DNA of 64,000 nt from Rebecca billardiae RCC1528 (GCA_965240325.2 OZ251227.1:3100001-3164000), one strand, 5' to 3'. Positions 12,040 through 35,719 are shown, counted from the first letter of the stretch. Notes: generated from the letters alone by a model not told the origin. Translations and numbers: made by a program.

Positions 12040-14511
12040 ATGGTATCGACTGCGCCACCCCCAACGCCCCTGCCGCGCGCGCGCCTCGCGCTGGTGGCAT
12101 GGATGAACGTGAGCGAGGCGCTCGTGCACACGATGTGTCTCCCATTCGCCCCCTTCATGGTGCAGCACCTCATCGGAGCCGACGACGCGGATCCTCGCAT
12201 CGCGTACCTCCAAGGCTGTCTGGTCGCGGCGGCCAGCCTGGCCGAGTTCGTTGGCAGCTACCCGCTAGGCTTGCTGAGCGACCTGATCGGCCGGCGGCCG
12301 GTCATTCTGCTGGCCTTATTCGCGACCACCATTTGCACGCCGGCGTTTGGCTTCGCCACCTCGTACGAGATGGCTTTTGCTGCCCGCACAGTGCGCGGGC
12401 TGTGCGCGGCCGTCACGGGTACGACCAAGACGTACCTGTACGAGATCACCGACAGCTCGAATCGCGACCGCGCGTTTAGCGTGCTGATGGCATGCTACGG
12501 CTTCGCGCTGTGCATCGGGCCGACCCTCGGCGGCGCGCTCTCCGAGCCTGCCCGCACGTGGCCGTCCACCTTCCCCAATGGCTCTCTCTTCGACCGCCAC
12601 CCGTACGCGCTCCCGTGCGTCGTCGTCGCGGCGTGCAGCGGGGCGGCGGGCGTGTGCGCGTGGTTCATGCTCGCCGAGACCGTGCACCGACGCTCCCCGT
12701 CGATCTGCTGCCTCGACACCCAGCCGCTCTTGGACAAGGGCGCCGCGGACAGCGAGTCTGGCGATGCCTCGAAGCAGTCGGCTCAGGGTGGGTCTGACGC
12801 GAGCGGCAGTGCCGCTGGGCGTGGCGGCAGCAGCGCACTCGGCCGCACCGCCTGGCTGGCCGCGGTGCTGTACGGGATGGTCGCGCTGGTGGTGGAGATG
12901 ATACAGGTGCTGTGGGTGCTGTGGGCCAAGCTGCCCCTCGCCCAGCGCGGCCCGCACCTTGACGTGCGCACGATCGGCCTCTTGCAGGCGGTCGGAGGCG
13001 TGGGCATGCTCTTCTCGCAGGCGGTCCTCTACCCGCATGCCGTGCGCGCGTTCGGGCTCAGCCAGACGTTCCGCCTGGGCTGGGTCGGGCCGGTCGTCGC
13101 GTATGTGGCGATCCCCTTCACGGTCCAGCTCGCTCCGCCCGAGGGCGGGTGCTGGCCCTCCCCGTTCTGCGCGTTGCTGGCGGTGCTCGAGCTGCTGCAG
13201 ATGGCAAGCAGCTCGGCGCTCTTCACCTGCGTCATCCTGATGCTCTCCAACTCGGTGCCGAGCGGAGAGCTGGGAGCCGCGAACGGAGTGGGGCAGTCGA
13301 TCGCGTCCATGGCGCGCTTCGCCGCGCCGCTCTTCAGCGCTACTCTCGTCGGCCAGCTCGCCTCTGGCGCGCCTCCGCTCGACGTGCGGCTTGCCTTCTT
13401 TGCGGTGGCAGCGTTCGCGCTGCTCTCGGTGGCACTCTCGTACGCGCTGCCGCGCTCGATCGACCACGCGTTCGACGGCGCGGCATCGCTCGCTGGGGCG
13501 CCCGCGTCGCGGCGGCCGCACGACCCGAATCGTTTGCCAGCCGCGATCGAGCAGCGCATGATGTGCGCGCCGCTGGGGGCCGCTGACCCCCATGCCGTCG
13601 CGCTCGCGCGTGAGCGGCTCTCGGCGGAAGGGATGGTTGTGATCGACAAGGGCGCCGCGTTCTCCTCAGCGGACGAAGTGCGCGCATGGAGCGCGGCTCT
13701 TTTCTCGGCTGAGTATGACTACACTCGCAGCGGCGCGGCCGCTCGCGACAACCTGGGCGGCGGCGTGCTCGCCACCACCGGCAAGGCCGAGCGTTCGGCC
13801 GTTCAGCTTCTCGAGCACCCCGAGATGAGCTACGAGCGTGAGTACCCTGGGAAGCTGCTCTTTGCGTGCTTCGAGTGTCCGCCCGACAAGGCGCAGACGA
13901 CGCTGCTCGAGACCAGCGCTCTGACGCGCGCGCTGCGAGGGACAGCGCTCTGGCACAAGCTCGAGGCGCACGGCCTCACCTACCACTTCAAGTACTACTC
14001 TGCGGACGAGGTCGGTCCAGGCGGCCCGCCGCCAGTCCTGCGCCCGTGGCAGGACTTCTTCGGAGTGCGCACGCGCGCTGAGCTCGAGGCGGAGCTCGGG
14101 CGGCGGGGCATGCGCGCAGAGTGGCTCCAGGGCGAGGCCGGTGTGGTGCGTGTCTCACAGACCCTGCCTGCCTTCGAGCTGGACGACCAGGGGGACTTGC
14201 GTGTGCACTTCACCCTCGCCGTTCACGGCTGCAAGTTCGACCCTGACCCCGCGTGGAAAGGCGTGGCGCACATCGACAGGCCGTATCACTTCACGCTGGG
14301 GGACGGCGCCGAGCTGACGCACGCAGAGCTGGAGCTTGTAAGAGGCATGTACGACACGCACCGCGTGCTGCTGCCGTGGGTGCCCGGCAGGCTTGTCGTG
14401 CTTGACAACCAGCGCTGGATGCACGGCCGTGTCGCTTTTGCACTCGAACCACACGAGACGCGCAAGATCGGCGTCTGCACAGGGGAGAAGCGCACACGGC
14501 GCCTCGTATGA
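12040..14511 (+). CDS. MFS transporter (DHA1/ZIFL-like) fused to a C-terminal TauD/clavaminate-synthase-like Fe(II)/2-oxoglutarate dioxygenase
   Basis: Multiple hydrophobic helices, MFS motif A GLLSDLIGRRPV, and IGPTLGGALSEP..HPYALP. The same frame continues with EHPEMSY..PGKLLFAC (HxE) and VLDNQRWMHGR (distal His). The ORF is open from 11887; ATG 12040 is the likelier start. Confidence 0.8.
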   Translation: MVSTAPPPTPLPRARLALVAWMNVSEALVHTMCLPFAPFMVQHLIGADDADPRIAYLQGCLVAAASLAEFVGSYPLGLLSDLIGRRPVILLALFATTICTPAFGFATSYEMAFAARTVRGLCAAVTGTTKTYLYEITDSSNRDRAFSVLMACYGFALCIGPTLGGALSEPARTWPSTFPNGSLFDRHPYALPCVVVAACSGAAGVCAWFMLAETVHRRSPSICCLDTQPLLDKGAADSESGDASKQSAQGGSDASGSAAGRGGSSALGRTAWLAAVLYGMVALVVEMIQVLWVLWAKLPLAQRGPHLDVRTIGLLQAVGGVGMLFSQAVLYPHAVRAFGLSQTFRLGWVGPVVAYVAIPFTVQLAPPEGGCWPSPFCALLAVLELLQMASSSALFTCVILMLSNSVPSGELGAANGVGQSIASMARFAAPLFSATLVGQLASGAPPLDVRLAFFAVAAFALLSVALSYALPRSIDHAFDGAASLAGAPASRRPHDPNRLPAAIEQRMMCAPLGAADPHAVALARERLSAEGMVVIDKGAAFSSADEVRAWSAALFSAEYDYTRSGAAARDNLGGGVLATTGKAERSAVQLLEHPEMSYEREYPGKLLFACFECPPDKAQTTLLETSALTRALRGTALWHKLEAHGLTYHFKYYSADEVGPGGPPPVLRPWQDFFGVRTRAELEAELGRRGMRAEWLQGEAGVVRVSQTLPAFELDDQGDLRVHFTLAVHGCKFDPDPAWKGVAHIDRPYHFTLGDGAELTHAELELVRGMYDTHRVLLPWVPGRLVVLDNQRWMHGRVAFALEPHETRKIGVCTGEKRTRRLV

Positions 14512-14776
14512 TTTGTAGCTAGTAGTATATATATGCCCCTGGTCAGGATGAGCCCACTAGTAGTAGTACAGTGGCTATGAAGCCTGCGCTATATAAGACT
14601 AATTTTTTACTATTTCAATATATATATATATATTATGTGACACTGTAATCTCGCCTGCCTGAGCTGTGTGCGTCTCTTATTCTTAGTAAACTGTAGCTGC
14701 GCGCACGGATGCGACGTGCGTGGCTCCCAGACCCAGCACCAGCACAGTCGAGCGACGGCGCCGCCGCGCGCGGCCC

Positions 14777-16537
14777 TCACCACAGGCTCTGGCCGCCCTC
14801 GATCACGAGGTTGTGTCCCACCATGTACGAGGACGCGTCGGACGCGAGGTACACGACCGCCGCCTGCAAGTCCGTCACCTGCGCTAGCCGCCCGGCCGGG
14901 ATCTGCTCGAGCCAGGTGGCGGCAAGCTTGTTGAGTGCGGGGTTGTCCCAGATCAGGGGGGTGTCCACAATGCCAGGCGAGATGCAGTTGACGTTCAGGC
15001 CGCGCGACGCCCACTCGCACGCGAGAGACTGCGTCAGCTTGACCACGGCCGCCTTGGACGCGTTGTACGCCGCCTGCTTCTGCGGGTGCGGCACGAGCAG
15101 CGACGCCATCGACGCCGTGTTGATGATCTTGCCGCTGCCGCGCGCGAGCATGTGCCGCGCCTCGTGCTGGCAGCAGAGGAAGACGCCGCGTGTGTTGAGC
15201 GCGAACGTGAGGTCCCAGTCGGCGACGGGCGTGTCCTCGGCGGCGGAGTTCTTGTTCACGCCCGCGTTGTTCACCGCGATGTCGAGGGCGCCCTTCCACG
15301 CCACCGCCGCGTCGACCATCGCCTTGACGCTCCCCTCGTCCGCGCAGTCGGCGCGCACCGCCATCGCCTCTGCGCCCTTTGAGGCCAGCTCGGCGGCCAC
15401 CGCGTCCGCACGCGCCTGGTCCAGGTCGGCGACGGCAACGGCGGCGCCCGCCTCGGCGAGCGCGTGCGCGAAAGCGCGGCCGATGCCCTGTCCGCCGCCG
15501 GTCACGAGGGCCGTCTTGCCGCTCAGCTTGAGGCGGTCGAGGATGCGCGCCCCCCCCACGCCTCGCGTCACCTCGTCCGGGCCGGCTGCGCCGCTGGGCT
15601 GCGGCGGCGGCGCAGGGGCCGCCGCCGGCACGGGCGCCGCGGCAACCTCGGCGGTGGGCACCGGCGCCGGCAGCGGTGGCGCCGCGCCCTTCAGCCGCAC
15701 GATCGTGATCCCGTCGCGAAGCGGCAGCGTGACGATCTCGACGCGCGCGTCCGCCCTCACCATCTTGTTGAACTCGCGCAGCGCCTCGCCGCCCGCGTTC
15801 CAGCTGTGCGGGTCGTGCGCGGCGCGGCCGAGGTAGGGCACGCCCTTGAAGAGGACGTTGTCGATCACGATCACGCCGCCCGGCGCGAGCAGCCCACGCG
15901 AGAGCACCGTCTCGTAGTACGCCGCGTACGAGCCCTTGTCCGCGTCGATGAACACCATGTCAAGCGGCTGCGCCTGCGGCCACGCGCGCAGCGTCTCGAG
16001 CGCGTCGCCGATGCGCACGCGGATCTTGTGCCCGTGGGGCGACTTGTCGAAGATGGGGCGGGCAAAGGCCTCAAGGAACGGGTCCACCTCGCACGAGATC
16101 ACCTCGCCGTCCTCGGGCAGCGCCTCGGCGATCGTGAGCGCGCCGTAGCCGGTGAACATGCCGACCTCGAGCACGCGCCGGGCCTTGAGCATGTACGCAA
16201 ACATGGCGAGCGTCTTGGCCTCGACGATGTCCGTGGTCCACCGCTCGGAGAAGCGGAACACCGTCTTGCCCTGCGCGTGCAGCTCGTCCCACGGCGCGCC
16301 GCGCGTCTTCCGCTCGAGCTCGGCCGCCTCGGGTGACGGCGCAGACGTGCACTCGACCAGGTACTCGTCCAGGCCACGCGAGAGGCTGGCCGCCTCGTCG
16401 AGCAGGGCGGTGAGCCGCTCGTTGGGCGTGTCAGGCACGAACGCGACCTCCTGCGCGGACGGTGGCGCGGACGACTCCGCTTTCGCCGCAGCGGCGCCGT
16501 GCGCGCGAATGCCCGCGACCGAGCTGGCCTGCTCCAT
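14777..16537 (-). CDS. O-methyltransferase-SDR oxidoreductase fusion (MT-Ox-like, gadusol pathway)
   Basis: N-half: LEVGMFTGY, FIDADK, VIDNVLFKG (caffeoyl-CoA/MysB-type OMT). Pro/Ala linker. C-half: TGGGQGIG, NNAG, YNASK (classical SDR), ending GHNLVIEGGQSLW. The architecture and C-terminus resemble vertebrate MT-Ox as I recall it. Confidence 0.85.
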   Translation of the reverse strand: MEQASSVAGIRAHGAAAAKAESSAPPSAQEVAFVPDTPNERLTALLDEAASLSRGLDEYLVECTSAPSPEAAELERKTRGAPWDELHAQGKTVFRFSERWTTDIVEAKTLAMFAYMLKARRVLEVGMFTGYGALTIAEALPEDGEVISCEVDPFLEAFARPIFDKSPHGHKIRVRIGDALETLRAWPQAQPLDMVFIDADKGSYAAYYETVLSRGLLAPGGVIVIDNVLFKGVPYLGRAAHDPHSWNAGGEALREFNKMVRADARVEIVTLPLRDGITIVRLKGAAPPLPAPVPTAEVAAAPVPAAAPAPPPQPSGAAGPDEVTRGVGGARILDRLKLSGKTALVTGGGQGIGRAFAHALAEAGAAVAVADLDQARADAVAAELASKGAEAMAVRADCADEGSVKAMVDAAVAWKGALDIAVNNAGVNKNSAAEDTPVADWDLTFALNTRGVFLCCQHEARHMLARGSGKIINTASMASLLVPHPQKQAAYNASKAAVVKLTQSLACEWASRGLNVNCISPGIVDTPLIWDNPALNKLAATWLEQIPAGRLAQVTDLQAAVVYLASDASSYMVGHNLVIEGGQSLW

Positions 16538-16668
16538 CCTTGTTGATTGCTCGTTGGCCGGCGATCAGCGAATTGATGAGAATGTACCTGAACCTTCATC
16601 AATGCATCAACGCGTCTGACCTTCCTCGTGACCTTCCTTTGATTCCGCGCATCCGCTACTTGATCCCT

Positions 16669-19600
16669 GAGGGACCACGACCGAACTCGTGCCAGAGGAG
16701 GTGGGGGTCGCACTGGCACCTCCTCTGGCCGACCCCCACCTCCTCTGGGGCTCCAGAGGAGGTGGGGGTCAGTGGCGCCGCGGCTGGGAGGCGCGGGGCC
16801 GACGCGGGTGCGTGCCGCGAGCCCTCGTCTCGGGCGCGCATCACCGCGTGCACAGCGCGCGCGGGCGCCCTGGCGCGCGCGCATCGCCTGCGTGCACTGA
16901 GTGAGCCTCAATCTCCCGCTGCGCGCTGCCTCGAACGCGCATCGCCACTCGCACGCGCAGGCCTGCCCCGCACGGCTTGGGCTTTTGAGCACCGGCTGGC
17001 GGCGGCGCGCCGGGTCAGGGCTTGGCCGGTGATGCGGCCTTCGCCCTGACCGAGACTTGGCGGAGGCGTGGGTAGTGCCATCGCCTGCCCGGATCCCGGG
17101 CCTCGCCGTCAGAGTGTACACGCGAGGCGCGCTGTCGTGGTTGACAGGTGAGGCGGTGCGCGCTCGCCCTCGAGCAGGCAGCGGACGTACCGGCAGGCGC
17201 GCGCGAGCACAGCGGGGCTGTCGAGCTGCTTCCGGCTGGGTAGATCGACGGTGCATGCCCTGGTCCTGGTCTGGGAGGCCTGCGCGGGTTCGGAGACCGG
17301 TGAACGCTCGGCGCGGACCCATGTCTTGCTGGGCACGGTTGCGCGACAGCTCAGCAGCCAGTCTCGAGGATGAGTGGCATCAGAGCGCTTGCCGGCGTGC
17401 TGGCGGACTCAACCACCGGGCCGATGCCCACGCCTTGGCCGGGATGCGACCAGCCCCGGAGTCCTCCGCAGCCGCCTGCCGCCGTCGACCCGCCGCCCAA
17501 GGCCCGCGGCCGGCGGGCCGCGCTGTCCTATAGCCCGCGGCACGCAGCAGGCCGCAGGACGCGCTGCGTCAGCGCGAGAGGGCTGAGTTCGTGAGGGATA
17601 TCCTCACCACGTCTGGAAGAGTTCTAGGAGCTGACGCAGGTTCACGGACCGTAGGCTGCTCGTCATTCGTCCCGCGACCCGGCAGCGGGCAGCATCAGGC
17701 TCAGCTTCCCAGTCGTCGGCTGACGACTTGACAATCAATCCTTGATCGCGGTCCTTCAGTCAGCTGCGAGCGCCCGGCGCCATCGTGCCCGCGCGGCGCC
17801 GGCTGGCTGCCGACGACAGCGACCTGAGACGGCCGGACGGTGGTGCATGCTGCTCATTGCCGCGTCCGAATGTACGTGGCGCCGAGCGCGTCACGGCCGG
17901 TCGTTCTATACGCGATAGATCCGCCGCACTAGCCTATGGCCGCACCACCGGCCACCGGGTGTTCGTTGCCATTGGGCCCGGCGGTGCGGCGCGCGGCACC
18001 GGCCGGCGGTCCACTGCTGACACTCGTTCCGTCACGGCAGCTTCTAGGATGCCAGTCGCGTGGGCATAGCGCGCCTCTCTGCCCGCGCGGCATGTGGGAT
18101 GATGTCAGGCTGCCGGATGTGACTGGCTTGGACCACTGACCAGGCCGCGGGAGCATGTCGCTGATGCATTCCAGAAGACTTCTCAGGGGAACCAGACGAT
18201 GACGGACGAGTGTAGGCTATACTTCTAATGCTGCTGAACTTGCTTGAGAAGGGCCACTCGTCGTGATCAATCGAGTCGTCACGTGATACTGACGCCAGAA
18301 TCGACGCGCCACTTGCCGGCAAAGTTAGAAGGCAGAACAACTCGCGTGTAGTTCCGTTGAGAGCGTATGTACGGTATGGCTGCGGCTGCAACGCGCAGTC
18401 GTCTGACGCAGTCATAATCAGCCAGCACTCAGCAGGAGCGCAGATTTTATGATGCTGGCCCGCCGTATCGTCTGCAGGCGCTTGCCCAAGGTGGTAGTGG
18501 GGCGGGTGGGACGCGGTTGAGTGGCACGTGACGAACTCTGAGTCGCGATGACATCTTATGCTGCTGGTCCGCGCAATGACTCAATAATCGATACGTACTG
18601 CGCCGCGCTGGTGCTAGGTCGGATGCCGAGCAGCAGCCTACGGTCGCTAAGTAGTCTAAGTCAGTTCATCAAACTTCACCAGACTGGGCGGTGGCGATCG
18701 TCTCTCTCATTGACTCGGCCTTCCTGAGGTGACGCAGCGATCCCGCAGTGCCCTCCTTCATGTCTGGGCAACCCTGCCGCCCGAGCTTTGCCGAGTGGGT
18801 GGCCTGCGGCCCGAACCTGGCGGCAGCGCCAACGCCCGGAGCTTGGCCGCGCTGTGTCCCTGCCAAGCTGTGACCAAGGGTGACAGTGACGAAGGAGTCT
18901 CGCCCCGCACCGCCGCCCTAGCCGCCTCACAGCCCGTCTCCGTCGCGGCCGCTGAACCCGCCGCCGAGCCAGCCACCGTTCCCAAGCCACCGTCACCGCT
19001 GCCGAGCTCACGGCCACTCCGCCGCTCACAGCCATCGTCGCCAAGTCGCCGCCACCAAGCCCACCACGGACAACCAAGCCCGTCTCATCAACCCCAGCGC
19101 CAAGCCTAGCGCTGGGTTCGCCCCCTTCGCCGCCACCGACTCCGCCCCCGAGCCCACCGCCGCTAAGTCCATCGCCGAGCCCGGCCGCCATCACCGCCAC
19201 TAAGCCCACCTCGAGCCTGCCGCTGCCGTCGCCGCTACCGACCCCGCTGCTGAGCCCACCACCGTCATCACCGCCTACATCGCCGCCACACAGCCCGCCG
19301 CTGAGCCTGCAGCCGTCGCTGCCTACATCGCCACCAACAAGCCCGCTACCATCATCGCCGCCATCAGCACCGCCTCCGACCACGCCGCCGAGCTCGCTGC
19401 CGAGCCCGCTACCGTCGCCGCCGCCTGCGCTGCCACCAAGCCGGCAGCCGATCCCACCGCCAAGTCTGCCACGTTAGCCACCGCCGAGCTCACCGCCGAG
19501 TCCACCGTCATCGCCGGCACCGAAACCGCCATCCTCGCCGCCGCCAAGCCCGCTATCAAGCCCGCCTCCGCCGCCTCCGCCGCCGAGCCCGCCTCCATCC

Positions 19601-20511
19601 CCACCACCCTCGCTGCCGCCCAGCCCGCTCGACCGCCTGTTCCTCTGGCCATCCGCCGCGCGGCCCGCCGGCCGCGGGCCTTGGGCGGCGGGTCGACGGC
19701 GGCAGGCGGCTGCGGAGGACTCCGGGGCTGGTCGCATCCCGGCCAAGGCGTGGGCATCGGCCCGGTGGTTGAGCCCGCCAGCACGCCGGCAAGCGCTCTG
19801 ATGCCACTCATCCTCGAGACTGGCTGCTGAGCTGTCGCGCAACCGTGCCCGGCAAGACATGGGTCCGCGCCGAGCGTTCACCGGTCTCCGAACCCGCGCA
19901 GGCCTCCCAGACCAGGACCAGGGCATGCACCGTCGATCTACCCAGCCGGAAGCAGCTCGACAGCCCCGCTGTGCTCGCGCGCGCCTGCCGGTACGTCCGC
20001 TGCCTGCTCGAGGGCGAGCGCGCACCGCCTCACCTGTCAACCACGACAGCGCGCCTCGCGTGTACACTCTGACGGCGAGGCCCGGGATCCGGGCAGGCGA
20101 TGGCACTACCCACGCCTCCGCCAAGTCTCGGTCAGGGCGAAGGCCGCATCACCGGCCAAGCCCTGACCCGGCGCGCCGCCGCCAGCCGGTGCTCAAAAGC
20201 CCAAGCCGTGCGGGGCAGGCCTGCGCGTGCGAGTGGCGATGCGCGTTCGAGGCAGCGCGCAGCGGGAGATTGAGGCTCACTCAGTGCACGCAGGCGATGC
20301 GCGCGCGCCAGGGCGCCCGCGCGCGCTGTGCACGCGGTGATGCGCGCCCGAGACGAGGGCTCGCGGCACGCACCCGCGTCGGCCCCGCGCCTCCCAGCCG
20401 CGGCGCCACTGACCCCCACCTCCTCTGGGCCCCAGAGGAGGTGGGGGTCGGCCAGAGGAGGTGCCAGTGCGACCCCCACCTCCTCTGGCACGAGTTCGGT
20501 CGTGGTCCCTC
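16669..20511. mobile_element. 3843 bp non-autonomous foldback/DNA transposon with ~855 bp terminal inverted repeats and 5 bp target-site duplication TCCCT
   Basis: 16669-17523 is the near-perfect reverse complement of 19658-20511. Ends are GAGGGACC...GGTCCCTC, with TCCCT at 16664-16668 and 20512-20516. No transposase motif seen inside. Confidence 0.9.
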
Positions 20512-21374
20512 TCCCTGATGATTCCCTGGGATGAAAAGCGGCGTGGTAGTCATATCATAATGATGATGATTACCGTGGGCGTAAAACATACTTTAGTTAA
20601 ATAAATCACGCCTTAACCAAGTGTGCACGTTAAAACATAGTAAACTGTATCATCACATCATTCATTAAATAGTACGTTGAACGTGTACGGTATTGATGGT
20701 GCAAGAAAACCTAGAGCCCCGACCGTTACACGGGTATATTAGGTCTCAGCGGCATGATGGGCATCCGGCGAATAAGTCATTCTGGGTCTCCCTGACACCA
20801 TGATACAGGCCCAACACCTCCAGGGACCTGAGCATCACCCTGGGACCTAATATTGCAGTCTGAAGTTGGGTGGGTCACTCTCGACGACGGCACGGCGGAC
20901 GGTCGTGATGCACGCGGGACAGCACATCAGGGGCATTCGGTGCACTAGCGAGGGTGGCATACGATGTCATCCCGACGTATGCATCCGTAGTATACTTGCC
21001 CGGCCCCAGGCGCCCTGTCATCCGGCACAATGTCACGTGCGCGGGCTTCACGCGGTCGTGATCGCGGGGTTCAACATGCTGTTCCGAACGAGCGCACGCA
21101 CGCGCGCCGGCGCGAGGCTAGCGAGAGGAATGCACCCCTCGCGTGCTCGCGCGGGCAAACGCACTTCGAGAGCATCCCACAGGCGCCAAGAACTTCCTCC
21201 GATGGCGATGCGCAAGCCGCTAGCCCCCACAAGCGCGGGGCGAACCACGCCGCAGGGCGGTGTCGCCGCTTCCCGCGCTGGGCCGGGGCTCTAGGTTTTC
21301 TTGCAACGTCAATATTTCCTCCGGACTGTCCATCCCGGATCGGTGAACGTTCGCGCGATTCACGGGGGACGAAG

Positions 21375-22808
21375 ATGGTGGGCCCCGCCACCTTCCAACT
21401 TGCCTGCGTGCTCCTTGCCGGCGTGCACTCGCCGCTGCACACCTCCACGCGCGTTACGGCGTTGCGCGGGCACGCCGACACGCTCGCGTTCTATGACGAC
21501 GCCTGGCACGCCCACGCCGACCCATCAACCGTGCCGCCGCACGCCGTGCGCTCGGCCGCGACGATCAAGGAGGACTCGCTGCCGTCCTCCTCCTCGCCCG
21601 GGACCTCTACGACCGAGTGGGCCGTGCGCGCGCCGCTCACGTTCGAGTACCGCGTGATCGAAGCGCCGCGCCTCTTCCACCCCGACAACGACGCCCTGCT
21701 CTTCGGCCACCTCGCCCCCGGCTCGGCCGCGCGCGCGCGCGCGCGCGAGCAGCGGCAGCGGCGGCTGGTTGTGATCGACCAGACCGTCGACGAGCTGTTC
21801 GGCGACGGGCTACGCGCGTACCTCGAGGCTCGGCGCGTGGATCACCAGATTGTCGCACTGCCCATGCTCGAGGAGACCAAGGACGTCGACCTCGTTCTCC
21901 AGGTCGCCGAGGCGATGAAGCGCTTTGAGCTCGCGAGGCGCGACGAGCCGGTGATCGCGATCGGCGGCGGCGTCTGCCTCGACGTGGTCGGCCTCGCTGC
22001 GACGCTCTTCCGGCGCGGCACGCCGTACATCCGCGTGCCCACGACGACGCTCTCGTACGTCGACGCCTCGGTCGGCGCCAAGTCCGGCGTCAACTTCATG
22101 GGCTCCAAGAACCGGCTGGGCGCGTATGTGCCGCCCGCGGCCGCGCTGCTTGACCCGAGCTTCCTGCGCACAGAGTCGGCGCGAGGCGTCTCGTCGGGCC
22201 TCGCGGAGATGGCGAAGATGGCGCTGGTCAAGTCGCCCGAGCTGTTCGAGCTGCTCGAGGCGCACGCCGAGCGCCTCGTCGCGCACCGCTTCCAGCCGCT
22301 CTCCGCGCGCGACGGCGTGCCCGGCCGCGTGCTCGGACTGTCAGTCCGGCTGATGCTGGACGAGCTGGCGCCCAACCTGTGGGAGGCGTCCCTCGACAGG
22401 CTGGTCGACTTTGGGCACGTGCTCGGGCAGGAGCTCGAGCTGCGCACGCTCGGCACGGAGCACGAGCTGACGCACGGCGAGTCCGTCGGCGTGGACATGG
22501 CGTTCATGACCGTCCTCGCCGCCGTGCGCGCGCAGATCAGCGAGGCGCAGCGTGACCGCATCCTGGCGATGCTGCGCCGCTGCGCCATCCCGGTGTACAG
22601 TGCGATGGTCGACGAGGCGCTCGTGCTCAGCGCGATGGTCGAGCGCCGCGCGCAGAGCATGGGACAACGACTGCCACTCCCCGTCGGGGTGGGCAAGGCA
22701 CGCATCTTCAACGACGTGAGCGAGGACGAGCTGCTTGGGGCACACCGCGCCTGGACCGACCTCTGCTGCACGCGACCGCCACCGGCGACACCGGCGACGC
22801 GCCGTTAG
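21375..22808 (+). CDS. Sedoheptulose 7-phosphate cyclase, 2-epi-5-epi-valiolone synthase (EEVS)-type
   Basis: GGGVCLDVVG, YIRVPTT, DASVGAKSGVN, KNRLGAY, MLDELAPNLWE, RLVDFGH and HGESVGVDM. In-frame ATG 21375 followed by a signal-like peptide. Confidence 0.88.
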   Translation: MVGPATFQLACVLLAGVHSPLHTSTRVTALRGHADTLAFYDDAWHAHADPSTVPPHAVRSAATIKEDSLPSSSSPGTSTTEWAVRAPLTFEYRVIEAPRLFHPDNDALLFGHLAPGSAARARAREQRQRRLVVIDQTVDELFGDGLRAYLEARRVDHQIVALPMLEETKDVDLVLQVAEAMKRFELARRDEPVIAIGGGVCLDVVGLAATLFRRGTPYIRVPTTTLSYVDASVGAKSGVNFMGSKNRLGAYVPPAAALLDPSFLRTESARGVSSGLAEMAKMALVKSPELFELLEAHAERLVAHRFQPLSARDGVPGRVLGLSVRLMLDELAPNLWEASLDRLVDFGHVLGQELELRTLGTEHELTHGESVGVDMAFMTVLAAVRAQISEAQRDRILAMLRRCAIPVYSAMVDEALVLSAMVERRAQSMGQRLPLPVGVGKARIFNDVSEDELLGAHRAWTDLCCTRPPPATPATRR

Positions 22809-23155
22809 TTGGAGCGCGCGACCACGCGGCGAGGAGGGCGTGCCCATTCGCATCGCACGGGTTCGATGCTGTACCTTTCCTAGATGACGGAATCAGATGA
22901 GGCGGCCGCTGCACGCGCCTTCATCCAGGCGTAGCTACGCCTGGATGAAGGGTGGACGGACGAATACTGTACACCACCGACGTCGGGGGTCCGCCAGATG
23001 AAGTTGGGGACTGTCTTCGGAGCGGGAATCAGAGCAGCCGAGAGACACCCTTCCGACCGGTATGATAGAGCATCAGCGGCTTCGTCAGTACAATACAATG
23101 ATGAGTTCACCCCAGATTCACCCCAGCCACTCCGCTCAGCCGACGCCACGTCACG

Positions 23156-24151
23156 ATGCTCTACGCTGTCACTGGCGCGAACGGCTTCATCGCCTCCCAC
23201 GTGGTGAGCAAGCTGGTCGAGCAGGGCCACAAGGTGCGTGCAACGGTGCGCAAGCCCGACGACGAGGCCAAGCTCGCCCACCTCAAGTCGCTCGGCGCGC
23301 CGGTCGAGATCGTCGTGCTTGCCGACCTCACGTCCGCAGAAGAGGTGGCGCCCGCGCTCAAGGGCTGCGACGGGCTCTTCCACATGGCGGCGGTGCACCC
23401 GACGTACGGCTTCGAGGAGACGCCCGAAGGCGCCGATGCGATCATCGCCCTCGCGGTCGAGGGCACCAAGGCGGTGCTCAAGGCGGCGGCCGCCGCGGGC
23501 GTGAAGCGTGTCGTCCTCACGAGCTCACTCGCGGCCGTCGAGTGTGGCAACGACACGGGCGTGCTGACCGAGGCGACATGGTCAAGGGAGGAGGTGTACA
23601 ACAGCTCAACATCGACGCAGTGGAAGACGCATCACGCGTACGTCAAGTCCAAGACGCTGCAGGAGCGCGCCGCGCTCGCCGCCGCCGCCGAGCTCGGGCT
23701 CGACCTGCGCGTGATCGCGCCGGGCAACCTATGCATCGGGCCAATCCTCAGTACACACATCAACGGCACGATGACGCGCGTGCGCGACGTGGTGCAGGGC
23801 TCAAACACGCTGAAGGGCTGCGCAGACCTCGGTGTAGTCCACGTCTCCGACGTCGCGCACGCGCATGTCGCCGCGATGACCACCGACTCCGCAAGCGGCC
23901 GTTACATCGTCGCGCAGAGCATGGTGCGGCTGGAGGACGTGTTCAGTGCGCTCAAGGAGCTCTGCCCGGACCGGCCGGTGGCGCCGATGACGAACATGGA
24001 CTACGCGTCGGGCACGCCGGGCAAGGCGCGCGCGATTGAGAGCCGCACCGAGGCTGAGCTGGGCGTGCAGTACGTGCCACTCAAGCAGACGCTCAAGGAG
24101 GCGGTCGACTCGATGGTGAGCAAGGGCTTCATCCAGGCCGCCGCCGCGTGA
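23156..24151 (+). CDS. NAD(P)-dependent epimerase/dehydratase / aldehyde-reductase-like extended SDR (DFR/CCR-like)
   Basis: VTGANGFIASHV, FHMAA, VLTSSLAAV and YVKSK catalytic motif. Confidence 0.88.
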   Translation: MLYAVTGANGFIASHVVSKLVEQGHKVRATVRKPDDEAKLAHLKSLGAPVEIVVLADLTSAEEVAPALKGCDGLFHMAAVHPTYGFEETPEGADAIIALAVEGTKAVLKAAAAAGVKRVVLTSSLAAVECGNDTGVLTEATWSREEVYNSSTSTQWKTHHAYVKSKTLQERAALAAAAELGLDLRVIAPGNLCIGPILSTHINGTMTRVRDVVQGSNTLKGCADLGVVHVSDVAHAHVAAMTTDSASGRYIVAQSMVRLEDVFSALKELCPDRPVAPMTNMDYASGTPGKARAIESRTEAELGVQYVPLKQTLKEAVDSMVSKGFIQAAAA

Positions 24152-24171
24152 AGACTGAATATAAGAACGCA

Positions 24172-24173
<2 letters not shown>

Positions 24174-24254
<81 letters not shown>
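24174..24254. repeat. (TA)n microsatellite
   Basis: Perfect TA run just after the reductase stop codon. Confidence 0.95.
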
Positions 24255-24256
<2 letters not shown>

Positions 24257-24748
24257 CGACGTGGTATGCACTGACGGGCAGGCGAGTCAGAGTCAGCAAG
24301 CTGTACAGCAGCAGATCGAGCAGCAGAGACAGCAAACACCAGCGGATCACAGCGCTCCTCGCCGTCGTCCCCCCTCCCCCTCGTAGCCGCCCATCACTCC
24401 AATCTCCATCGCCGAGCGGAAGCTCGACGCACCGTCTGGCGTCGACGCGCGCGCGCCACCGCGGTGGTCGCGGTGCCGCACGCGTCGTCCGAGCCGTCGT
24501 CTCGAAGTAGTCCGGTCGTACGCAGCGCCCCCCGCGGGCGCGTGACCCCCGGGCGCACGTGCGCCATGCGCGCGCGGGCGATGAGCATCTTGGCCTGGCC
24601 ACGCAGCCGCAGGCAGCGCATGCCCAGCTCGCGCCGCATGGTGCCGAGCAGCGCGCGCTCGGCGGCGGGGCGCGATCGGGCGCGCTGAGGCCGCGCGCGC
24701 CACGTGTCCCGTCCCCTCTTCACGGGCGTGATCTTAGTGAGGGTGAGG
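24254..24748 (-). mobile_element. Degenerate, more truncated copy 2 of the (TA)n-associated non-LTR retroelement
   Basis: Reverse complement matches ~8841-9290 (AAERALLGTMRRELGMRCL; 3' end ..CATACCACGTCGTTA) with indels; TA-rich runs on both sides. Confidence 0.85.
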
Positions 24749-24956
24749 AATATATCTATATAGATATATATAGATATATATACATATCTATCTATCTATC
24801 TATATTCGGAGTATTACTCCTGCTAAGACTATAGGCTACAATTCAGCACTCAGCAGCTGCAGACTGTAGTAGCTACGGAGTACCGTATGATCGGGCCGGG
24901 CTGCGTGTAGCAGGCTGGGCACCACTCCTCGTCCAGCGACCGCGGGCTGCGCATCG

Positions 24957-26438
24957 TCAGTCGCCGTTCTCCTCCGTCATCTTGCCGATGCACAGGTCGA
25001 CCTTCGCCCAGCGGTTGCCCGACCACACGTTGCGTGCGAGCAACACGGGCACGTGTACGCAGTGCTGCGCGATGAATGGCAGCGGGTCAGCAGCGTCCCA
25101 GTACGCATCCTTCTTGCTTGCGAAGATGTGCAGCGCTGCGCGCGCGCGCTCGAGCACCGAGAGCCCGCGCGGCGCGAGCACCTCGTAGTACAGATCGGCC
25201 AGCGTCCAGTTCACCTCCTCCGCGGCCGGCACCGGCTGCACCGCGTCCGCGGGCGCGTCCGCGTTGGCCGCCATCGCACTCGGTTCCGCGAGCAGCGCGC
25301 GGCCAAAGTCGGCCATGTTGCGGTGGTACGAGGTGACGTTGGACGAGAGCCGTGGGTTGCACTCGATCGCGCGCGCCACGCCGTCCTCGCCGACGAAGAA
25401 GTCGATGCAGACGATGCCGCTCAGCTTGTACGTGCGCACGAAAGCGCTCACCCAGTTGAGGATGGCCGAGTTGCCCGCGTGCGTGTAGTTGAAGCACGAG
25501 ATTGACGCCTGGTTGTCCGTGAAGGTGAGCACGCGCCCGTCAGTGCACAGCGCGCACGAGGAGTACTCGACGCCCTCGAGCACCTCCTGCACGAGCCACG
25601 GCGCCTCCGCGCTCACGGCGAGCCCCGAGACGTACGCGCGCAGCTGTTGCTCCGCGCACGGCAGCTGGAAGAGGTCGAGCCTGCGCATCGGGTCGTAGTT
25701 GCACGACTTGAGCAGGTAGCGCTTGGGCGAGTGGCGCGGGAGAGCGGCGTTGAACGCGAGGATCTCGTCCATCGAGCGCATCCGCTGCGTGTCCGGCATG
25801 GGTAGCCCCGCCTCCTTCGCCTTCCGCGCGAACACGACCTTGTCGTCAAGCGCGAGCACGTCCTGCTCACAGAGCGACCAGCTGCGCACGCCCGGCGGGA
25901 GGCGCGAAAAGGCGCGCGCCTCGTACCGGCTGGCGGAGGGCGAGGTGACCGGCACGACGAGACTTGCGCCCTCGCGCTCGACCAGCTCGCTGATCGCGCG
26001 CTCGAACGCCTCGGACTGCTGCTCGGGGACAGGCACCGTCACAAACCTGTCCACGTGCCTGGAGAAGCGCGACGCCACCATCCAGTACTTGCGCGTCTCG
26101 ACGAGGATGACGCGGCAGCCCGCGGCGCGGAGCGCGCGGCACATGACGAGCGACTTCGTCATCTTACCGCCCGTCACGATCGCCGTCTTGCCGTTGAGCG
26201 CCAGCGGGCGCTCGCGGCCGCGCTTGCGCAGCCACTCGAGCGCCGCGCCGACGATCGCAGCCGTCACGACAAGGGGCGCGAGCATGGCGAGGCAGCCGAG
26301 GCAGAGCAGAGACCACGCGCGGGGCTCAATCATGTCGCGCAGGGAGCGCGCATGCGTTGCCACCGGCGAAGCCTCGCCCTGCTGCGCGCGCAGCGCATCC
26401 CCGACTCCGCGCGGCTCGATCGTGCAGGGCAGGCACAT
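24957..26438 (-). CDS. mysC: ATP-grasp ligase, MysC-like (mycosporine-glycine synthase type)
   Basis: TGGKMTKSL, ETRKYW..SRFS, LDDK, LKS..YDPMRRLDL, IECNPR, DPLPF and K.DLCIGK, all characteristic of MysC. The start could be 26438 or 26333. Confidence 0.88.
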   Translation of the reverse strand: MCLPCTIEPRGVGDALRAQQGEASPVATHARSLRDMIEPRAWSLLCLGCLAMLAPLVVTAAIVGAALEWLRKRGRERPLALNGKTAIVTGGKMTKSLVMCRALRAAGCRVILVETRKYWMVASRFSRHVDRFVTVPVPEQQSEAFERAISELVEREGASLVVPVTSPSASRYEARAFSRLPPGVRSWSLCEQDVLALDDKVVFARKAKEAGLPMPDTQRMRSMDEILAFNAALPRHSPKRYLLKSCNYDPMRRLDLFQLPCAEQQLRAYVSGLAVSAEAPWLVQEVLEGVEYSSCALCTDGRVLTFTDNQASISCFNYTHAGNSAILNWVSAFVRTYKLSGIVCIDFFVGEDGVARAIECNPRLSSNVTSYHRNMADFGRALLAEPSAMAANADAPADAVQPVPAAEEVNWTLADLYYEVLAPRGLSVLERARAALHIFASKKDAYWDAADPLPFIAQHCVHVPVLLARNVWSGNRWAKVDLCIGKMTEENGD

Positions 26439-26639
26439 CGTCGTCAGAATCGTCGGGAGACTACGAGAATACTACTACAGTCTTAGGAATCATCTATCGA
26501 TCGAGGAATCCGAGCGCGCGGGAAAAGCTGGTACTGTACAACGCGCGGATTCTCACGTCCTCGAGTCGCAGCGGCCCCGTTGTCACAGGCGACCACCCCA
26601 GTTCTCCAGGATCGTGATCCTTCCGCGCCGTGCGCGACG

Positions 26640-27782
26640 ATGCCAGCGGCCGAGGACAAGATGCGCGTGGTGCATCTGATGGGCTCCGCCGTGTCGGCGT
26701 ACTACGAGAGCCTGAGCACATTCTACGCGCAGGGCTGCGTCGACGGCGCGCAGGACGAGCTGACACGCGCCCACTTTGACTTTGCGTTTGCGATCGTGCA
26801 CGCGACCGCGGATGGGCCGCGCTGGTCGTTCCCAGCCGAGCTCTCCGAGAAGGCGATCGCGGCCGCGCCGCGTCTGACGCACGCGGAGGGTGTCCAATGC
26901 CTTGCCGCGATCGACGCCGACGTGTGCGTGCCGCACATGTTCTGCTACCCCGGCATGACCACCTATCGCGCCCTGCTCGACATGCTGGGCGTGCCGATCC
27001 TGGGTTGCCCGCCGGCGTGCATGGCGCTGGCGACGGACAAGTTCCAGACGCGCGCGGTGGTCGCGGCGGCGGGCGTGCGCGTGCCAACGGGCGAGCTCCT
27101 CCGCGCGGGCGAGCGCCCCAGCCTCGCGCTTCCCTTCGTGCTCAAGCCGTGCCGCGAGGACAATTCTATGGGCGTCTCGGTCGTGCGCCGGCCAGAGGAG
27201 CTCGACGCGGCGCTCGCCGAGGCGTTCCGCTTCGACGAGCGCGTGGTGTGCGAGCAGTTTGTGCCACCCGGCCGCGAGATCCGCTGCGCCGTGATCGAGG
27301 ACGAGCACGGCGAGCCCACGCGCGTGCTGCCGTGCCTCGAGTACTTTCTGAGCGAGGAGCACCCGATCCGCACGCCAGGGGACAAGCTGGCGAGCAGCGA
27401 GGACGGCAAGGTGACGGGGCTCGCGTCCGGAGCGCGCAAGTGCCCGGCGGAGCTGTCGGACGAGCTGCGCGCCAAGCTCGCGGATGCCACGATCCGCTCC
27501 CACCGCGCACTGGGCTGTCGCGACTTCTCGCTCTTCGACTTCCGCGTCGACCCGGAGGGCGAGGTGTTTTTTCTCGAGGCGTGCCCGGTGTGCTCCTTCT
27601 CGCCAAAGAGCGTGATCGTCTCGCTGGCGGACGCGGCGGCCGACGCGGATGTGGCGCACCCGGCGCTCTTCCACACGCTGCTCCGCCGGGCAGCTGGACG
27701 AGGCCAGAAGTGCAAGCCCAAGGCCAAGCCAGACGAAAAGCCAGTGCAGGTCTTTGGCATGCATGCAGACTGTGCGCGGTAG
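26640..27782 (+). CDS. mysD: D-Ala-D-Ala ligase-like protein, MysD-like (disubstituted MAA synthase type)
   Basis: HLMGSAVS.YY..LS..YA, PHMFCYPGMTTYRALLD, KPCREDNSMG, SLFDFRVD and FLEAC..CSFSPKS; divergent from mysC. Confidence 0.88.
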   Translation: MPAAEDKMRVVHLMGSAVSAYYESLSTFYAQGCVDGAQDELTRAHFDFAFAIVHATADGPRWSFPAELSEKAIAAAPRLTHAEGVQCLAAIDADVCVPHMFCYPGMTTYRALLDMLGVPILGCPPACMALATDKFQTRAVVAAAGVRVPTGELLRAGERPSLALPFVLKPCREDNSMGVSVVRRPEELDAALAEAFRFDERVVCEQFVPPGREIRCAVIEDEHGEPTRVLPCLEYFLSEEHPIRTPGDKLASSEDGKVTGLASGARKCPAELSDELRAKLADATIRSHRALGCRDFSLFDFRVDPEGEVFFLEACPVCSFSPKSVIVSLADAAADADVAHPALFHTLLRRAAGRGQKCKPKAKPDEKPVQVFGMHADCAR

Positions 27783-33733: not shown

Positions 33734-34776
33734 CTAGTCCTCGTCGTCGTCGTCGCCGCCGGCGGCCGCCGCCTGCTTCTTCTTGTACGCCGCGATCTTC
33801 TGCCGCACCCGGTCCTTCCTCTGCGAAAGCTTCATCTTCTTCTTCTTCAGGTCCGGGTACGAGTCCTGCTTGTCGGTCGGCTCCACGGACGGGTCCTCGC
33901 GGATCTTCTCGTGCGCGTTCTGGTACATCTCCTCGAGGTCGTCCGGGCCGATGTCGTTCTCGATGTACTTGGCGAACTGCGACTGGTAGCGGTCCTCGTC
34001 CTGCGCGGCGAGGGTGCGCGGCCGGGCGGTGCGGGACGCGCGCCGGGGGCGGTGAGATGCGCGCGCGCGCGCAGCGGCCCGCGCATGCGGCCGAGGGCGG
34101 GCGAGGGGAAAGGCGTGGTCGCTTGCGCACGCACGTCCTCCTGGAGCATCTCCATGTACTCCTGGACGTGGCCGCCGAAGATGTACTTGCGGCACGTCTC
34201 CGCATCGAGCTCCTTCTCCTCCGGGTCGTAGCCTGGCAGGCGCTTCTCGTTGTGCGGGATGTCGAGGCCGCCGTCCACCGCGCCCTTGAGCGCGCCAAAC
34301 ACGCGGTTGCCCGTGGTCGTGCGCACGAGGCCGACGTCGAGCACGCAGGTGAACGGGCGCGGCCCGTCGTCCTCCTCCTCCACCTGGTACATCTCGCCGT
34401 CCGGCTCGGTCTGCCCCTCGTACTTCTCGTCGAGGCCAAACTTCTGCAGCGTTCGCCGCGCCAGCAGCAGCCCGGTCGCATAGCACGCCGACCAGTTGGT
34501 GAGCCCCACCTTGATCCCGTAGCGCGGCAGCTCGTGCGAGTACGCGGCGCAGACGACAATGTCGCCGTGGATCTTCGCGTCGATGATCTGGCAGATCACG
34601 TCCTTGTTCGTGATGCGCACGACCAGGCGGTACTTTGACGACTCGTACTTGTTCTTGTCCTGCACGATCAGCCGCTTGCGCGCGTAGTAGTCCGTCTTGC
34701 CCTCGCGCCGCCGGCGGTACTTCACCTGGAACTCCTTGAAGTACTGCGCCGTCTTCTGGACCTTCATGACACCCAT
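33734..34776 (-). CDS. RPL5: 60S ribosomal protein L5 (uL18), 2 exons (34776-34135, 34000-33734)
   Basis: [32 protein letters not shown] and [19 protein letters not shown] intron 34134-34001 gives ..[13 protein letters not shown]. Confidence 0.96.
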
Positions 34777-34921
34777 GGTGGCCGAGCGACCCGCGCGCGC
34801 AAGTCCCGACGACGGGGCCTGCTCAGGTCTCCTGGCACACACGCGCTTCCGCTGTGTGTGGGCACGGCGATGGCTCTTGCTCACGTGGACATCGGCGCCT
34901 CCCGGACCGCCCCGGACTACG

Positions 34922-35719
34922 ATGGCGGCGGCGATTACGAGCACGCGCGCTCTGCTGCGGCCGCGAGGCCGCCCCGCGCGGCTGCTCTGCACGGCGCCCA
35001 CGGCGGCGCAGCTGCTCGCGAGCTCGCAGCGCCTCACGGACGCCCTCGCCTCGCCCCCCGTCGTCGCGCAGCTCGAGCACGTGCGCGACCGCGGCGACGC
35101 GCTCACCAAGTGGGTCACGTGCAACATGCAGCTCACGCAGCAGGCGGCGGTGGCGTGCCAGGGGCTGCCCAGCTTCGGGCCGGACCCGACGAGCGTCGGG
35201 CGGTATCTCGAGCTCCTCCTCGGGGGCGCCGAACCGGCCGACGCCGACGACGCCTCGCGCGAAGCCCTGCGCGAGCACCACCGCGTGCGCTGGTCGATGC
35301 TACTCAACTCGGCGTTCCGGTGCGAGCTCGGGCCGCGGCGCGACCGCGAGGAGGCGCGCGGCATCGTGATCGGGATGGTCGACGCGCTGCAGGCGCCGGG
35401 GTTCCTCTCGAAGGTCTCCGACCTGATGCGCGGCGAGCTCATGGGCCAGCTCTCGCCGATGGAGAAGCAGCAGGCCGTCGCGAGGCTGATGATCATGCAG
35501 CAGAAGGAAGCCATTGTGCCGTTCGGGTACGACAGCTCGGACCAGGGGTACGCGCAGGCGCAGGCGGCGCTGCAGGAGCACGCGCTCGACGCCGTCATCC
35601 AAGGGAGCATCATGCACGTGACGCAGCGCGTCTACCTCAGCGCCGGCATCGACATGCAGGAGCTCATGCGCACCCTGAGCGGCGGCGCTGGCACGCCGGC
35701 ACCCTTGCCCAGCGTCTGA
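34922..35719 (+). CDS. Hypothetical helical protein with a mitochondrial-like presequence
   Basis: ATG 34922, Arg-rich non-acidic N-terminus, coding-like codon usage; divergent from RPL5 (145 bp apart). Confidence 0.65.

Follow-up and report, generated by a model that had tools for sequence, protein, structure and literature searches.

Can a eukaryotic alga join the gadusol pathway known from vertebrates to the amino acid ligases of the bacterial mycosporine-like amino acid (MAA) pathway? This question is raised by six neighbouring genes in a 64,000-nucleotide stretch of the genome of Rebecca billardiae RCC1528 (GCA_965240325.2 OZ251227.1:3100001-3164000), hereinafter referred to as the window. 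Gadusol is made by EEVS and MT-Ox, and the zebrafish MT-Ox, zgc:113054, converts 2-epi-5-epi-valiolone (EEV) to gadusol (Osborn 2015, PMC4426668). In an earlier note on this DNA, made from the sequence alone, the six genes were named as a major facilitator superfamily (MFS) transporter-dioxygenase fusion, an O-methyltransferase (OMT) fused to a short-chain dehydrogenase/reductase (SDR), a sugar-phosphate cyclase, an extended SDR, and MysC-like and MysD-like ligases. All six were found at positions 12040-27782 as long, intact open reading frames (ORFs), none of them interrupted and without sign of introns, and their Pfam domains agreed with these names (Table 1). From sequence comparison, the locus is probably a nuclear biosynthetic gene cluster for gadusol-derived MAAs, a reading that we hold with somewhat better than even confidence. 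The most likely product would be a gadusol-core MAA, probably bearing two amino acids.

The cyclase had been proposed to be of the EEVS type and not DDGS, and the comparisons supported this. The protein has a DHQS-like fold (Pfam DHQ_synthase and DHQS_C), and its E, H, and H metal-ligand motifs align with those of ValA. Among solved structures, ValA (4P53) gave a score of 286 bits with this protein, compared with 190 bits for Anabaena DDGS (5TPR). ValA and DDGS differ at three active-site positions (L267/D281/H360 versus E254/A268/T347), of which the first two are backed by mutagenesis (2023 review, PMC10666671), and Osborn 2015 separates EEVS from DDGS by two sites (PMC4426668). Leu331 and Asp345 of the 477-aa cyclase align with L267 and D281 of ValA, and both are EEVS-type residues. 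Gln427 occupies the place of His360 and is of neither the EEVS nor the DDGS type; across the marine-eukaryote clade this position is Q, L, F, N, or H, whereas fish EEVS keep His. The comparison of the window cyclase covered these three of the 14 sites of the EEVS fingerprint, all 14 of which are conserved in animal EEVS.

A 214-row cyclase alignment was assembled from fish EEVS (as named by NCBI), Aureococcus, Pycnococcus, approximately 100 cluster representatives, and mys-context cyclases from bacteria, the last gathered by scanning bacterial genomes with a MysC alignment and taking mysA-B-C contexts. In all 69 mys-context cyclases the first site was E; the second was A in all but one, which had S. 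The remaining rows carried L (or I) and then D. In a 64-row tree (IQ-TREE), the window cyclase fell in a 23-row clade with a support of 100/99, together with fish EEVS and marine eukaryotes including Aureococcus, and the DDGS of mys clusters were split off by a 100/98 branch. The zebrafish EEVS and ValA sequences were absent from this tree, and ValA was compared by the PDB scores instead. Amino acid identity was 47-50% to the fish proteins and 64% to that of Aureococcus, compared with 30-37% to MysA in most bacterial loci. The enzyme is therefore predicted to convert sedoheptulose 7-phosphate to EEV.

Several relatives of the cyclase occurred in other settings. A cyclase on another contig (L002:411-1799) was 63-67% identical to that of the window, carried the same LDQ fingerprint, and was nested in the marine-eukaryote/fish EEVS clade. 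The contig itself looked bacterial, with genes packed on the same strand (glycosyltransferase, PIG-L, phytoene desaturase and synthase, and lycopene cyclase), and gene transfer, in either direction, is likely behind this placement. In marine metatranscriptomes (P0046, P0054, P0412, and P0088), members of the same EEVS-type clade were fused to an N-terminal OMT without an oxidoreductase domain and showed the fingerprint LDN or LDF. This clade also contained one transaldolase-cyclase fusion, an arrangement that would link the cyclase with the source of its sedoheptulose 7-phosphate.

The neighbour of the cyclase gene encodes an OMT-SDR fusion of the MT-Ox type, as anticipated in the earlier note, and is an orthologue of zebrafish zgc:113054. 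The protein consists of an N-terminal Methyltransf_3 domain (2e-44) and a C-terminal adh_short domain (7e-54), and the TGxxxGxG, YxxxK, and D-D-N metal motifs were present in its translation. Identity to the Danio rerio protein was 56% over 92% of the length, with 50% in the methyltransferase (MT) domain and 66% in the oxidoreductase (Ox) domain. Higher values were obtained for the Aureococcus protein (68-72%) and for coccolithophore transcripts (61-64%). Between the MT domain and MysB, identity was 41-49% in nearly all bacterial mys loci. MT-Ox and EEVS are divergent neighbours in the window and in L001, L004, L007, and L174. When metagenomes were scanned with an MT-Ox alignment, the matches were for the most part bacterial OMTs or SDRs of a single domain, together with one canonical mysABCD locus, and no new synteny was found. 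In three soil metagenome contigs (L095-L097), stand-alone SDR genes were 60-64% identical to the Ox domain; no cyclase or methyltransferase lay near the SDR gene within the 12 kb contig L095.

The two ligases were assigned from the genes that surround their nearest relatives in bacteria, and these upheld the MysC-like and MysD-like labels given at the outset. The MysC-like protein matched NCBIfam PRK06849 over its full length (E 2e-69), a score below the curated cut-off of the model, and no relative of this ATP-grasp protein was found among solved structures. The bacterial comparison set consisted of the 80 loci that best matched it. Its identity to the ATP-grasp genes of these loci was 32-40% (median 34%) over nearly the full length, and beside those genes lay DDGS in 71/80 loci and an OMT in 73/80, mostly directly upstream. 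Because this adjacency to DDGS and OMT is the arrangement that defines mysC, the window protein was placed in the MysC family. The GGKMTK and IECNPR motifs were invariant in the MysC alignment, as were 66 columns in total. For the MysD-like protein (Pfam Dala_Dala_lig_C, 1e-23), the gene of which is divergent from that of MysC, a D-Ala-D-Ala ligase (Ddl)-like gene was found near mysC, mostly directly downstream, in 48/80 loci, with 37-48% identity to the window protein (median 43%, 232 bits). The best genuine Ddl in the PDB reached only 86 bits. Since the Ddl-like genes near mysC score far above the cell-wall Ddl, the second ligase was placed in the MysD family. Thus, the window ligases belong to the MysC and MysD families, and their ligase activity is predicted.

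In the MysC tree, 45 homologues of the eukaryote type, including those of the window, Chromera, and Calcidiscus, formed one clade. A long branch with full support, of 1.35 changes per site, divides this clade from the bacterial MysC linked to DDGS. The context was read for three members of this clade (window, L004, and L007), and all three adjoined EEVS/MT-Ox.

The synteny check suggested in the earlier note gave a positive result: EEVS/MT-Ox together with MysC-like genes, and in some cases with MysD-like genes, recurred in other eukaryotic loci. A marine metagenome locus (L004/L005) contained a fusion of MysD with an Old Yellow Enzyme (OYE)-type protein, EEVS, MT-Ox, an EamA transporter, a cinnamoyl-CoA reductase (CCR)-like reductase, an MFS gene, and a MysC-like gene; identities to the window proteins were 51% for MysD, 54% for the reductase, and 52% for the MysC-like protein. 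L007 and a related 54 kb contig of P0105 carried EEVS, MT-Ox, an EamA transporter, and a MysC-like gene (48%), with a fragment of an extended-SDR gene on the 54 kb contig. In addition, the green prasinophyte Pycnococcus provasolii (CP150553.1, L174:4885-14490) possessed an MFS gene, MT-Ox, EEVS, and a MysC-MysD fusion gene of 870 residues, of which the MysC-like part was 27% and the MysD-like part 38.5% identical to the window proteins. Our literature search found no paper describing this Pycnococcus locus. No DDGS-type gene was present in the window or in the L004/L005, L007, or Pycnococcus loci. In Aureococcus, the divergent MT-Ox/EEVS pair stood by itself, and no ligase lay within 10 kb of it. 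Because the linkage recurs in four independent loci, which differ in gene order, and is accompanied by two gene fusions, it is not attributable to chance, and these observations argue strongly that the clustering of EEVS/MT-Ox with the ligases reflects one pathway.

The OYE-MysD fusion was observed as a single gene in the marine eukaryotic sequences L004:431-2734 and L005, in which the MysD-like ligase is joined to a flavin reductase of the Old Yellow Enzyme type. Such a fusion hints that the L004/L005 version of the pathway includes a reduction of the enone ring.

The features of the locus are listed in Table 1. The window is eukaryotic nuclear DNA and not a bacterial contaminant, because a gene for the 60S ribosomal protein L5e (33850-35613, minus strand) lies 6 kb downstream of the cluster and because the G+C content of the cluster equals that of its flanks (approximately 68% in the window). 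The L5e domain starts only at residue 293 of this 588-residue ORF, and the part upstream of it is probably non-coding or has another exon structure.

Table 1. Features of the candidate MAA locus in the window (positions counted from the first nucleotide of the window).
Feature	Position	Strand	Basis
MFS transporter-TauD-type dioxygenase fusion	12040..14511 (ORF open from 11887; likely ATG 12040)	+	Pfam
MT-Ox (O-methyltransferase + classical SDR)	14777..16537	-	Pfam
Insertion, not a pathway gene	16670..21312		Inverted repeats
EEVS-type sedoheptulose-7-phosphate cyclase	21375..22808	+	Pfam DHQ_synthase + DHQS_C
CCR/DFR-like extended SDR reductase (DFR, dihydroflavonol 4-reductase)	23156..24151	+	Pfam Epimerase/3Beta_HSD/NAD_binding_10
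MysC-like ATP-grasp ligase, hydrophobic segment at N-terminus	24957..26438	-	ATP-grasp Pfam; NCBIfam PRK06849
MysD-like ligase (D-Ala-D-Ala-ligase homologue)	26640..27782 (ORF from 26580; likely ATG 26640 or 26661)	+	Pfam Dala_Dala_lig_C

Two further genes of the cluster may act on the product. The first gene contains MFS_1 (E 4e-24; residues 79-229 and a second stretch) and TauD (E 1e-8; residues 631-864) in one frame without a stop codon. Its dioxygenase domain aligns with At3g21360 (PDB 1Y0Z, E 2e-13) at the HxE...H iron triad and the DN..W.HGR motif, and its language-model neighbours were SyrP-like TauD proteins, the SyrP-like proteins being amino-acid hydroxylases. The TauD domain is thus predicted to be a clavaminate-synthase-like Fe(II)/2-oxoglutarate dioxygenase. 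The possibility that it is a homologue of MysH was rejected, as no detectable similarity was found in the 80 bacterial mys loci, including that of Nostoc linckia NIES-25; the domain would be at most an analogue of MysH, if it acts on an MAA. For the MFS-dioxygenase fusion, no exact match was found in assemblies and no relative in metagenome contigs. The MFS genes of L004 and L174 are separate from any dioxygenase and barely similar to the MFS of the window. The extended SDR had CCR (155 bits) and DFR as its closest solved relatives, and its orthologue, 54% identical, is the reductase of the L004/L005 cluster. This CCR/DFR-like reductase is a candidate tailoring enzyme.

The divergent promoter region of MT-Ox and EEVS in the window holds a 4.6 kb insertion (16670-21312), and it is this insertion between the two genes that extends the cluster to 15.7 kb. 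Its arms (16669-17523 and 19658-20511) are 855-nt inverted repeats that are 99% complementary. Logan contigs of the same organism (L089-L093; ERR14847148-51) covered five of the six genes at 99-99.9% identity. Two of them (L090/L091) joined window position 16669 to 21313 via an AT-rich sequence of 86 nt. The insertion may therefore mark a structural polymorphism, set two copies apart from each other, or be a palindrome produced in assembly. Between the window copy and the other copy, 3/477 residues differed in the cyclase and 5/493 in MysC. Several of the Logan contigs end in (AT)n, so RNA and DNA cannot be told apart in them, and they were not counted as expression.

On the basis of these assignments, a pathway to gadusol-derived MAAs can be proposed. 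The EEVS-type cyclase would convert sedoheptulose 7-phosphate to EEV, and MT-Ox would oxidise and O-methylate EEV to gadusol; both steps are predicted from orthology to the characterised zebrafish enzymes. The ring would next receive one amino acid, probably glycine, from the MysC-like ligase and then another from the MysD-like ligase. The disubstituted imino-mycosporine formed in this way would retain the additional hydroxyl that gadusol has at C6. Both ligations are suggested by homology, by the clustering, and by the reported acceptance of gadusol by bacterial MysC and MysD in engineered strains. It is accordingly reasonable to suppose that the alga makes amino-acid conjugates of gadusol. 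The final step is the least secure: tailoring of the core, or of the side chain of an amino acid, is the probable role of the reductase and of the TauD-type dioxygenase, and transport of the product across a membrane is that of the fused MFS domain.

Several observations weigh against this pathway. With Gln at the ValA-360 site, which varies in the algal clade, EEV is not guaranteed as the product of the cyclase. The eukaryotic MysC clade lies far from the characterised MysC, so its substrate may differ. The MFS-dioxygenase fusion is linked to the pathway by its adjacency in one genome, and the insertion may disturb expression of the window copy from the MT-Ox/EEVS promoter. The unusual Gln would suit a cluster that makes ordinary MAAs with a 4-deoxygadusol core by a different route, either with an altered-site cyclase that does not stop at EEV or with a tailoring enzyme, such as the reductase, that removes or avoids the C6 hydroxyl. 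The conservation of the reductase in two clusters would fit such a route, as would the OMT-cyclase fusions without an oxidoreductase in the same clade, by which pairing with an Ox domain is not universal. We nevertheless consider it improbable, since both of the mutagenesis-backed positions that distinguish EEVS from DDGS are EEVS-type and since the Ox domain is intact and as similar to that of zebrafish as stated above. Moreover, no enzyme is known to deoxygenate gadusol, which also counts against it.

The divergence of the eukaryotic MysC bears on another explanation, in which two separate functions happen to be neighbours: gadusol would be an end product, and the ligases would act on another substrate, such as an unrelated acid or the 4-deoxygadusol made by a DDGS whose gene lies elsewhere in the genome. 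The EEVS/MT-Ox pair of Aureococcus does stand alone. This arrangement is unlikely in view of the ligases that adjoin EEVS/MT-Ox in four independent loci of differing gene order, with MysC and MysD fused in one, and of the absence of a DDGS-type gene from the window and the compared loci. As for the insertion, its long inverted repeats separate two core genes and a copy without it exists, so the window copy could be silenced or decaying, with the product coming from the other copy. We give this very little credence, because all six reading frames are intact, the two copies differ at few residues, and they could simply be haplotypes. A cluster for gadusol-derived MAAs is thus the reading that we retain.

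The concept of a natural hybrid between the gadusol and MAA pathways is not new. In the earlier note, such compounds, the gadusporines, were named as known only from engineered expression, but the literature does contain natural precedents. A cluster of EEVS, MT-Ox, a MysC-like gene, and an OMT has been described in Klebsormidium nitens, Chromochloris zofingiensis, and Coccomyxa subellipsoidea, for which a gadusol-core MAA was proposed, the cluster being seen as a likely natural hybrid between the pathways of vertebrates and bacteria, with reference to gadusporines (Foflonker and Blaby-Haas 2020, PMC7826186). Furthermore, natural gadusol-core MAAs, namely prasiolin and klebsormidin A/B, have been isolated from green algae, and the klebsormidin structures carry one amino acid (PMC7118736). 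In our literature search, no natural EEVS/MT-Ox + MysC cluster was found to have been tested biochemically, and the 2020 green-algal proposal still stands as a hypothesis.

The window resembles the green-algal neighbourhood (PMC7826186) in that EEVS, MT-Ox, and a MysC-like ligase are clustered in a eukaryotic nuclear genome, and the same gadusol-core hypothesis applies to both. It differs in the addition of the MysD-like ligase, the CCR/DFR-like reductase, and the MFS-dioxygenase fusion, and in the position of its cyclase, which belongs to the fish/marine-eukaryote clade, whereas the green-algal cyclases belong to another. The green-algal neighbourhood also has a second OMT, related to cyanobacterial ones, which the window cluster lacks: no extra Methyltransf_2-type OMT was detected in the six genes or in ten large flanking ORFs, although small or intron-split genes in the flanks are not excluded. 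To what was known, the locus adds a MysD partner, a reductase, the fusion of transporter and dioxygenase, and evidence that extended clusters recur in marine eukaryotes. Because Aureococcus is the closest named relative, the alga is unlikely to be a green one, and its lineage is probably new for such a cluster as well.

With the gadusol genes of vertebrates and Aureococcus, the window shares orthologous EEVS and MT-Ox, which are neighbours and, as in Aureococcus, divergent. MysC and MysD are absent from the vertebrate (PMC4426668) and Aureococcus loci, whereas the window has both, and fish EEVS carry His at the ValA-360 site where the window cyclase carries Gln. According to Osborn 2015, EEVS adjoins MT-Ox in both Aureococcus and Coccomyxa, and the vertebrate genes may have come from algae (PMC4426668). 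The fish enzymes are sister to the marine-eukaryote clade, and the locus is thus relevant to the question of where the gadusol genes of vertebrates came from. The canonical bacterial mysA-mysB-mysC-mysD clusters (Anabaena, Nostoc, Microcystis, and actinomycetes) share homologues of MysC and MysD and a MysB-like MT domain with the window. They use DDGS (E/A) and a stand-alone OMT and have a 4-deoxygadusol core, whereas in the window the cyclase is EEVS-type (L/D), the OMT is fused to an SDR, and a gadusol core is expected. Gadusporines, as summarised in two later papers, were obtained by expressing bacterial mysC/mysD with vertebrate gadusol genes in Streptomyces (Osborn and Mahmud 2019, via PMC7826186 and PMC10666671). 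On these summaries, the engineered pathways comprise the same four enzyme types as the window (EEVS, MT-Ox, MysC, and MysD), but their genes come from fish and bacteria, whereas those of the window are natural neighbours with tailoring genes of their own.

A broader reading, which we put forward tentatively and with rather less than even confidence, is that marine phytoplankton lineages (the window alga, L004, L007, and Pycnococcus) make natural disubstituted gadusol-core imino-mycosporines, i.e., gadusporines, by means of a dedicated and long-diverged MysC/MysD clade, and that the window alga adds tailoring by an exporter-fused dioxygenase and a CCR-like reductase. The natural gadusol-core MAAs cited above, prasiolin and the klebsormidins, bear a single amino acid; if the reading is true, the disubstituted compounds would thus form a class of sunscreens, abundant in the ocean, that has not been described before, with tailoring that has no described counterpart. 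The presence of both ligases predicts two amino acids on the gadusol core, a class of compounds otherwise described from engineered strains. With related clusters in marine metagenomes and a prasinophyte, the compounds could be widespread in ocean picophytoplankton, and MAA screens limited to deoxygadusol-core masses would miss them. The compact locus, with its six uninterrupted frames, would make stepwise expression easy.

A bacterial combination of EEVS and MysC was also observed. In Gloeocapsopsis crepidinum LEGE 06123 (L013:5871-10443), a ValA-like cyclase gene is followed, in order, by a Methyltransf_3 OMT, a MysC homologue, and a Methyltransf_2 OMT. The cyclase scored 398 bits to 4P53 and showed the fingerprint LDH, and the last gene of the locus recalls the extra OMT of the green-algal cluster.

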